Shown: positions 7,099 through 9,057 of the stretch, one piece after another
Layout of the letters: every line of letters starts with the position of its first letter
How positions within the stretch are numbered: the stretch's first letter is position 1
NCBI GenBank assembly: GCA_023515725.1
Contig: JALDTO010000154.1
Location: 380,447 to 391,482, forward strand
Source: Amoeboaphelidium protococcarum X5
Taxonomy: Eukaryota > Fungi > Aphelidiomycota
Reading direction: 5' to 3'
DNA: 11,036 nt
Made by a program: the position numbers and the translations under genes
Notes under the pieces: model-generated
What the model saw: only the letters and a program-made list of their open reading frames with translations
What the model was told of the DNA's origin: nothing
Databases searched by the model: none

Positions 7099-7338
7099 TG
7101 AAATCGAAGGCACGCATACAGTATATACCACATTTGCATTTTTACAATCTGTTACAATCTTTATGCCAAAGTTTCGCCATTGAAAGCTTTGCCAGCAAGT
7201 AACGTTAAGAAATTTACCTTAATCAACTCAAAGTACGATCAACGCAATCCGGACTTATCGTTTCACTTTCTAATTGTTTCGAGATTTGAGGAATATTGCA
7301 AACTTTATAGTCAAATTTGCATTAATCATAGTTCATCA

Positions 7339-8607
7339 ATGAGTTTAAGTAGGCCACATTCTAGAAGCAAAAGCGCAGTAAGATTTTCTTTATATGATGA
7401 TGTTTGATCAATCTCACTATATCATATTTGTAGTCTTCAGCGATATCATTTGGTGCTTTTGGATCGTCTTTAAAGGCAACTCCGCAAATATAGTATAGCT
7501 AATCTGCGGATGAATACGAACTACTGAATGTAATTGGAATTATGGATGATATATCTCAAGCATATTGTGCAAAATTCAAGCCCGCTTCAATGGATGTTCC
7601 GTCTCTAGTCAACAAGCGAGATATAGTCACTGTCAAAGTCACCGATCTTAGTCTATCTACAGATTATGAGCTTATACTGGAAATGATAGTAAGCACTTAT
7701 GCCTTGAATATTATTTTGATTCACCCCAATGAGTATGGTAGAACATTGTGAGAAACACTAAACTGTGTCGCCATCCCAACATCTTGCAATACTATACTTG
7801 TTTTGTGGATCAGAGCGAGAAGCTGTGGACAATCACTCAGCCTGTTCGCATGGGATCTATCAAGCAGCTGATGATGGACTACTATCCAGATGGTCTTCCA
7901 AGCGAACAAATAGTCGCCACCATTACAAAGGAAGTAATTAAAGGCCTAAATTATCTCCACGAAAAACATCTCATCCACAAGTAAGTACGCAATTTATGCA
8001 TATTGATCCGACTCCGACTTGTAACATATATAATTTATAGTAACATACGTGCTGACAATATCTGGCTTGATGTGACGGGGGAGATCAAGATCACCGGGAT
8101 GCATCAATTGATCGATAAAATGTCTAAAGGCACTTTGAAACCTTCCGTGTATAAATTTGTGGGAGATCCGGAATGGTAAGCTCCGGAAGTAATTAGTCAG
8201 GTAGGAATTACAAGACGTGATGGCTGATGTTCTCTTTTATAACTGACATATTGTAGGCAACAACGTTTAACCAGAAAGTGGACATTTACTCTCTGGGAAT
8301 CACAGTGTGTGAAATGATACATGGCAAAACTCCATTCAGTCAATGGCCTGCTCTCAAGATACTGTTATGCAAGCTGCATTATGAGGTGCCAACAATGTAA
8401 GAGCAAGGTGAGAGTGAAAAGACAATGTCCAAAAATTATCAACGCTTCACCGAAAGATGCCTCACCAAGAATCCTCTGCAGAGACCAAATTGCTCTGAAC
8501 TCTTGGATGATCAGTTTGTAAAATCCGGCAGAGACGCTCATTACTTGGAGATCAATCTGGTGAGACCTATTAAAAGCAAATCCAGTGCATCAAAGTATAC
8601 TCAATGA
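7339..8607 (+). CDS. STE20-family (OSR1/SPAK/STRAD-like) pseudokinase, ~347 aa, 5 exons: 7339-7377, 7434-7688, 7742-7980, 8041-8200, 8257-8607
   Basis: Four GT-AG introns of 56, 53, 60 and 56 nt give a continuous frame: ADEYELLNVIG, VTVKVTDL, CRHPNILQYYTCFV, GLNYLHEKHLIHNNIRADNIWL, IKITGMHQ, FVGDPEWQAPEVI, VDIYSLGITVCEMIHGKTPF, CLTKNPLQRPNCSELL; TGA 8605-8607. The first exon is the least certain. Confidence 0.88.
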
Positions 8608-8692
8608 TTATGCATTGTTAAATGCAATATATAAGTTTATTTACACTAAAGTCACAACCACTCAATTCAACTTCATATTACAGCAATAAAAC

Positions 8693-9057
8693 TCAAGACC
8701 ATAGCTAATCGTAGGAGAATGTTATTAACAACTTGTCTTCAATAGCATGGCACTACATTAATCGAACATAAAAAAACGCATTCCGATTCTATATAATGTA
8801 AACAATACACGAAAGATATTGGCCAAGATTTCATCCGGTAGAGGGACAAAGGCATTATTAATGTAAGTGTAAACGCGTCTTGAGGCTATGTGAGCAGAGT
8901 CATCTTTGAGAAACTGCTTCTGTAAAAAGTCAGTCACCATCTTGAACGTCTGTTTCGAGCTTATTTTCACCTTATTTTGATTTAAATTAGGTGCATTACC
9001 GGCAGACTTGAATTGTATGATAATCTTCTCAGGACACTGCGAAAGTTCCAGCGGCAT
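8693..9057 (-). CDS. ATG12: ubiquitin-like autophagy protein ATG12, 102 aa, exons 9057-8809 and 8752-8693
   Basis: KIIIQFKSAGNAPNLNQNKVKISSKQTFKMVTDFLQKQF...VYTYINNAFVPLPDEILANIFR, then a 56-nt GTATTG...GTAG intron (8808-8753), then CHAIEDKLLITFSYDQLWS-TGA. Matches the ATG12 pattern G-AP-L...F..V..FL-K...Y-N--F-P-PD. Confidence 0.9.

Follow-up and report, generated by a model that had tools for sequence, protein, structure and literature searches.

Serine-terminated ATG12 in the aphelid Amoeboaphelidium protococcarum suggests a lineage-specific switch to non-covalent ATG12–ATG5 assembly

Introduction

The C-terminal glycine of ATG12 is needed for its adenylation by ATG7, its transfer by ATG10 and its linkage to a lysine of ATG5 (PMC13434597; PMC11764061). 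This covalent route has been lost in some lineages. In Apicomplexa (Plasmodium and Toxoplasma gondii) and in Komagataella phaffii, ATG10 has been lost and ATG12 binds ATG5 non-covalently while autophagy is supported, according to Pang et al. (2019) as cited in PMC11764061 and PMC12005411. Loss of ATG10 or of the ATG12 glycine is counted on at least 16 occasions in a set of 94 eukaryotes in the work of Zhang et al. (2022), again as cited in PMC11764061.

Here we describe the ATG12 gene found in an 11,036-nt stretch of DNA from Amoeboaphelidium protococcarum X5 (assembly GCA_023515725.1, contig JALDTO010000154.1, positions 380,447 to 391,482 of the forward strand), which is referred to in full as the window and in which position 1 is the first letter. 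A. protococcarum, an aphelid that lives as a parasitoid of green algae, has a genetic code in which UAR is read as glutamine (PMC5304391). The published assembly comprises 24.7 Mb at 40.5% GC with 13,180 genes, compared with 7,568 genes in A. occidentale (PMC10608142); these gene numbers fit the observation that every gene sought in A. protococcarum in this study was found in two diverged copies. The ATG12 gene of the window ends in serine at the position of the conjugating glycine, and the accompanying set of autophagy genes resembles that of the organisms in which ATG12 and ATG5 assemble non-covalently.

Results

An ATG12 gene ending in serine

The ATG12 gene lies on the minus strand of the window and is split into two exons. 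Exon 1 (8809–9057) starts with an ATG at 9057 and is translated without a stop through 83 codons, from Met1 to Arg83. It is followed by a phase-0 GT..AG intron of 56 nt (8753–8808) and by exon 2 (8693–8752), which encodes CHAIEDKLLITFSYDQLWS and closes with a TGA stop codon (8693–8695). Direct reading of the minus strand gives CHAIEDKLLITFSYD-TAG-LWS-TGA for exon 2, in which the in-frame TAG (8705–8707) corresponds to Gln99 and the TCT codon (8696–8698) to the terminal Ser102. The product is thus 102 residues long, and the 19 residues contributed by exon 2 complete its UBL domain. Glycine is absent from exon 2 and from the rest of the last 80 residues of the protein.

The two exons were analysed apart: exon 1 was searched singly, and the whole product was represented by two database proteins, P0151 and P0001. 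Exon 1 alone matched positions 1–67 of the 87 positions in the Pfam APG12 profile (PF04110) with an E-value of 2.3e-14, and its score of 54 bits, well above the cut-off of 22.8, places it in the ATG12 UBL family. In a word-index protein search, the sole match of exon 1 was P0001, a 102-residue 'hypothetical protein' of A. protococcarum that is the product of a second ATG12 copy (see below). The 90% identity cluster of P0001 contains P0151 (NCBI KAI3638154; A. protococcarum, 102 residues), whose sequence matches exons 1 and 2 together exactly when TAG is translated as Gln. P0151 follows the same exon model, so the NCBI annotators had arrived at the same ATG12 gene; the identical 102-residue protein appears under several NCBI accessions. 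The splice and the 3′ end of the gene, as predicted here, rest on comparative evidence and on this identical NCBI model.

When P0151 was compared with the PDB using phmmer, it aligned over its full length with Arabidopsis ATG12b at E 3e-12, with human ATG12 at E 8e-10 and with yeast Atg12 at E 2e-7. Trp101 paired without gaps with the penultimate tryptophan of the human protein (4gdk_A, 90/91) and of the Arabidopsis protein (1wz3_A, 95/96), which places Ser102 at the position of the terminal glycine. An earlier note on this DNA had read the gene as ending in Ser (TCT) instead of Gly, had aligned its end without gaps to the C-terminus of human ATG12, and had taken the TAG as a glutamine codon. 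The first of these readings is borne out by the direct reading of the minus strand and the second by the PDB alignment of P0151; the third agrees with the ordinary CAG found at the same codon of the second copy.

About 55 nt past the ATG12 stop is an AATAAA hexamer (8636–8641, minus strand), which is present in both ATG12 copies within a conserved TAGTGTAAATAAA stretch and may serve in polyadenylation. A convergent protein-kinase gene on the plus strand ends beyond it, with its stop codon at 8605–8607, 85 nt from that of ATG12.

Two ATG12 copies under purifying selection

A six-frame search of the whole A. protococcarum genome (G000; 23.6 Mb, about 40% GC) with the Pfam APG12 profile identified four loci, namely the ATG12 gene of the window, a second copy (L001, contig C264), and two ATG8 genes (L003 and L004). 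The second copy is 93% identical to the window gene at the DNA level. It ends GAT-CAG-CTG-TGG-TCC-TGA, so the terminal serine is specified by a synonymous codon, Gln99 by CAG, and the TGA stop is kept. The CAG at the Gln99 codon confirms that the TAG in the window gene is read as glutamine.

The genome-wide search revealed one further ATG12 locus and no ATG12 ending in glycine. The possibility, raised in the earlier note, that the gene is a non-conjugating paralogue is therefore rejected, because the only two ATG12 loci in the genome both end in serine. The sole ATG12 of A. protococcarum, present as two diverged copies, is Gly-less yet constrained. Its orthology to ATG12, as opposed to an ATG8-like paralogy, is indicated by the identity of the remaining APG12 loci, which are ATG8, and by the synteny and intron it has in common with A. 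occidentale.

The differences between the two copies bear on whether this end is maintained. In exon 2, seven differences are synonymous and none is non-synonymous in the ATG12 frame (pN/pS 0/0.618), compared with 2 synonymous and 6 non-synonymous, and 1 and 6, in the other frames. Exon 1 contains 7 synonymous and 6 non-synonymous differences (pN/pS 0.031/0.129). ATG12 is under purifying selection. Because all seven differences in exon 2 are synonymous, the serine end is real and itself under selection; it is due neither to chance nor to sequencing error.

A product translated through a retained intron (..ISYG..) was considered and rejected. Its frame is not ATG12-like and accumulates 2 synonymous and 6 non-synonymous differences. 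The intron measures 56 nt in one copy and 58 nt in the other, in neither case a multiple of three, and after retention the two copies would no longer share a reading frame.

Loss of the terminal glycine in the A. protococcarum lineage

A full HMMER search collected 432 relatives of ATG12 at E ≤ 1e-3. Among the 150 best representatives, 112 are Gly-terminal, and most of the non-Gly ends arise where a gene model has run on into the conserved intron. Entries P0002, P0006, P0028, P0094, P0096, P0136, P0137 and P0143, together with others, continue in this manner after ..NL[FY][KR]. Loss of glycine was rejected for these entries, whose truncation and odd C-termini are annotation artefacts at the conserved phase-0 intron.

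True Ser-for-Gly ends were found in six of the 150 best representatives, including the A. protococcarum protein, and serine is the replacement in every true Gly-less end of this set (6/6). The five others (P0020, P0030, P0044, P0050 and P0083) end in ..AW-S or ..AY-S; the foraminifer Nonionella stella accounts for two of them and environmental or run assemblies for three. Two Ser-ending genes close with AGT-TAA and TCG-TAA (L025, 3390–3411; L026, 1670–1687). The Ser-ending lineages are regarded as independent on the basis of taxonomy and not of the ATG12 tree, which was built from 95 columns, is poorly resolved, and has starred branches that force only one change of the Ser label.

The orthologue in A. 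occidentale (P0153; KAI3657827) retains the glycine. It ends ...LQEVYG with the codons GGT-TAA, and its end reads ...LLINYSLQEVYG. The position of the phase-0 intron is common to A. protococcarum, A. occidentale and the nearest relative (L020), and a protein-kinase gene lies tail-to-tail with ATG12 at both A. protococcarum copies and in A. occidentale (JALGPX010000094.1; L022, 5001–8812; 7339–9057 in the window). The most similar sequence, P0002, ends ...SPAYG once its exon 2 is read. Retention of glycine in both A. occidentale and P0002 indicates that its loss is, as judged from these sequences, specific to the A. protococcarum lineage.

An N-myristoyltransferase gene is located near ATG12 in A. 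occidentale; in L020 (2290–3429) it lies immediately upstream of ATG12. Its position adjoining ATG12 suggests that the closest relative is an aphelid-like organism too.

In the ATG12 tree, the stem of the A. protococcarum proteins measures 1.73 changes per column, compared with a median of 0.47 for terminal branches and 0.48 for A. occidentale, which makes the A. protococcarum branch about 3.6-fold longer than that of its congener. The long stem is consistent with a past phase of accelerated change or a shift in constraint, followed by the strong constraint seen now. It could also be taken, along with the parasitoid habit of the organism, as a sign that the last codon was misassembled or that the gene is a pseudogene decaying after a reduction of autophagy. 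Such an explanation is extremely unlikely, however. It is contradicted by two independent loci that use different synonymous serine codons, by the occurrence of the identical protein under several NCBI accessions, and by reading frames and splice sites that are intact; the 7 to 0 ratio of synonymous to non-synonymous differences in exon 2 and the retention of the full ATG8 and ATG5/ATG16 machinery, described below, also speak against it.

The remaining conjugation machinery

ATG10 was not detected in a six-frame search of the genome at E ≤ 10 with a single HMM, PF03987 (Autophagy_act_C), which covers the ATG3 and ATG10 family and was applied exon by exon. The search returned only ATG3, again in two copies. 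C98 carries one copy. The second is divided between the end of C189 (L006, 7266–8195) and the end of C13 (L007, 157574–157711), so these two contigs are probably neighbours in the genome. The N-terminal ATG3 exon on C13, which spans 44 profile positions, was still detected at 24.6 bits, showing that the search is sensitive to small exons. A short, intron-rich and divergent ATG10 could nevertheless be missed by an exon-wise HMM search.

ATG5 (C235 and C179), ATG16, ATG7, ATG3, ATG4 and ATG8 are each present in two copies. Both ATG8 genes end ...YSGENTFG-AEH-TGA. Both ATG5 copies contain ..EVFYSLLKQS.. within a match to the Pfam ATG5_HBR profile (profile positions 6–57, E 4e-9); a phmmer comparison of the stop-free ATG5 pieces with the PDB yielded no ATG5 alignment. 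The lysine in ..FYSLLKQS.. is a candidate acceptor, which would correspond to K130 in human ..HFMSCMK130EAD... The acceptor lysine of ATG5 seems to be kept, which is neutral for the non-covalent reading.

About 2 kb downstream of one ATG5 copy (L008) lies an ATG5 UblB-like fragment (L010; G000:C235:151399-151512) that matches profile positions 45–80 at 23 bits and contains a TGA in frame. The fragment probably arose by partial duplication of the ATG5 C-terminus and has since decayed.

An apparent acceptor lysine, a search for ATG10 that was HMM-only and exon by exon, and a splice and 3′ end known from comparison and the NCBI model would leave room for a system that is still covalent. This would need a divergent ATG10 that was overlooked, together with a usable ATG12 end supplied by an alternative 3′ exon, by read-through or by processing. 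Several observations make this combination highly improbable. Processing cannot expose a glycine, because exon 2 has none. Read-through finds no coding pattern past the TGA, where a 1-nt indel separates the two copies about 35 nt downstream and substitutions lack three-base periodicity. The convergent kinase gene is close downstream at all three loci, and in the window its stop codon, 85 nt away, is too close for another 3′ exon of ATG12 to fit in between. A [W/F/Y]-Gly-stop ending was not found on the minus strand of 7300–8810, and the NCBI model is the same 102-residue protein.

Discussion

Neither ATG12 copy of A. protococcarum has the exposed C-terminal glycine of the canonical covalent system, and the E2-like ATG10 of that system was not found by the one HMM applied exon by exon. 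With Gly replaced by Ser and no other glycine in the last 80 residues, ATG12 can be neither activated by ATG7 nor transferred to ATG5. The protein is nonetheless kept under selection together with ATG5 and ATG16, from which non-covalent binding to ATG5 follows as the most likely arrangement. A switch to a non-covalent ATG12–ATG5(–ATG16) E3, with the complex and its E3 activity both predicted, is accordingly considered a likely explanation of the data, and the overall inventory (a Gly-less ATG12 under selection, no ATG10 detected, ATG5 and ATG16 present, and a full ATG8 arm) matches the non-covalent pattern. The earlier note had proposed an independent switch to non-covalent assembly. The switch is supported by a sole ATG12 that lacks the glycine under selection, by the failure to detect ATG10 and by the retention of ATG5 and ATG16; its independence is supported by the syntenic A. 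occidentale orthologue, which still ends in glycine.

In such a system, the dedicated E2 ATG10 would apparently have been lost, and ATG12 would bind ATG5 through the usual ATG12–ATG5 interface without a covalent bond. ATG16 would dimerise and target the ATG12–ATG5 complex, and the resulting ATG12–ATG5–ATG16 assembly would be the E3 by which ATG3~ATG8 is recruited to the membrane. The work of ATG7, ATG3 and ATG4 would then be confined to ATG8.

ATG12 might instead be kept for a role independent of ATG5, with ATG8 lipidated by ATG5–ATG16 alone or without an E3. The binding of ATG12 to ATG5 in A. protococcarum is itself a prediction, the long stem branch could reflect a changed function, and some lineages are reported to lack the whole ATG12 system while having ATG8 (PMC11764061). 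This explanation is nevertheless unlikely, given that two copies each of ATG5 and ATG16 have been kept and that ATG12 is under purifying selection. The core of the family is also kept, with Pfam and PDB matches that run the full length of the protein and include the C-terminal strand and Trp101, and in every experimentally tested Gly-less case, as covered in PMC11764061 and PMC12005411, the two proteins still bind.

Within the non-covalent ATG12–ATG5 reading, the change of genetic code offers a conceivable trigger. There is no processing protease for ATG12, and read-through of an ancestral UAA stop would therefore cap the glycine and disable conjugation; reassignment of UAR to Gln would thereby have pushed the lineage to the non-covalent complex before the TGA stop was fixed. 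A. occidentale still has the UAA stop after Gly (GGT-TAA). That the code change triggered the loss of covalent conjugation in A. protococcarum is very doubtful, however. URM1, another ubiquitin-like protein dependent on an unprocessed Gly-Gly end, retains ..LHGG-TGA in the same genome (L028, 1740–1776; G000:C207), which weakens the idea, as does the occurrence elsewhere of Ser-ending ATG12s with ordinary TAA stops. If the idea were true, the A. protococcarum and A. occidentale pair would form a natural experiment in which a code change led to the rewiring of a UBL pathway.

In the literature covered, in which Zhang et al. (2022) was represented by citations of it, no work linking aphelids with ATG12 and ATG10 was found. 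A. protococcarum would provide a clean, lineage-specific case of the transition from covalent to non-covalent assembly in the sister group of Fungi. The syntenic orthologue that keeps the glycine in the same genus could show which changes at the interface allow the covalent bond to be dispensed with. The 'hypothetical protein' label of the NCBI entries can be corrected to ATG12.

The A. protococcarum protein shares with human ATG12 (4gdk) and Arabidopsis ATG12b (1wz3) a full-length UBL similarity, a C-terminal strand that aligns without gaps, and the penultimate tryptophan. It differs from both in having serine for the terminal glycine, in lacking the N-terminal disordered extension, and in the replacement of the glycine of the DG motif before the last strand (..IEDK..). 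The A. occidentale ATG12 has the same phase-0 intron position, the same tail-to-tail kinase neighbour and the UBL core; it is about 39% identical to the A. protococcarum protein, and unlike the latter it ends ...VYG and has an N-terminus that is 14 residues longer.

As in Toxoplasma gondii, Plasmodium and Komagataella phaffii, as far as these systems are presented in PMC11764061 and PMC12005411, a conserved ATG12 without the terminal glycine is accompanied in A. protococcarum by ATG5, ATG7 and ATG3, and ATG10 was not found. Binding and function are experimental in those organisms, whereas we infer them for A. protococcarum, in which ATG16 is clearly present. The change in A. protococcarum would be a separate event from theirs, because A. 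occidentale keeps the glycine and the lineage belongs to Aphelida, sister to Fungi. It is of the same kind as the recurrent losses of Zhang et al. (2022), as these are cited in PMC11764061, and, involving no new mechanism, it adds one more instance to a known kind of event.
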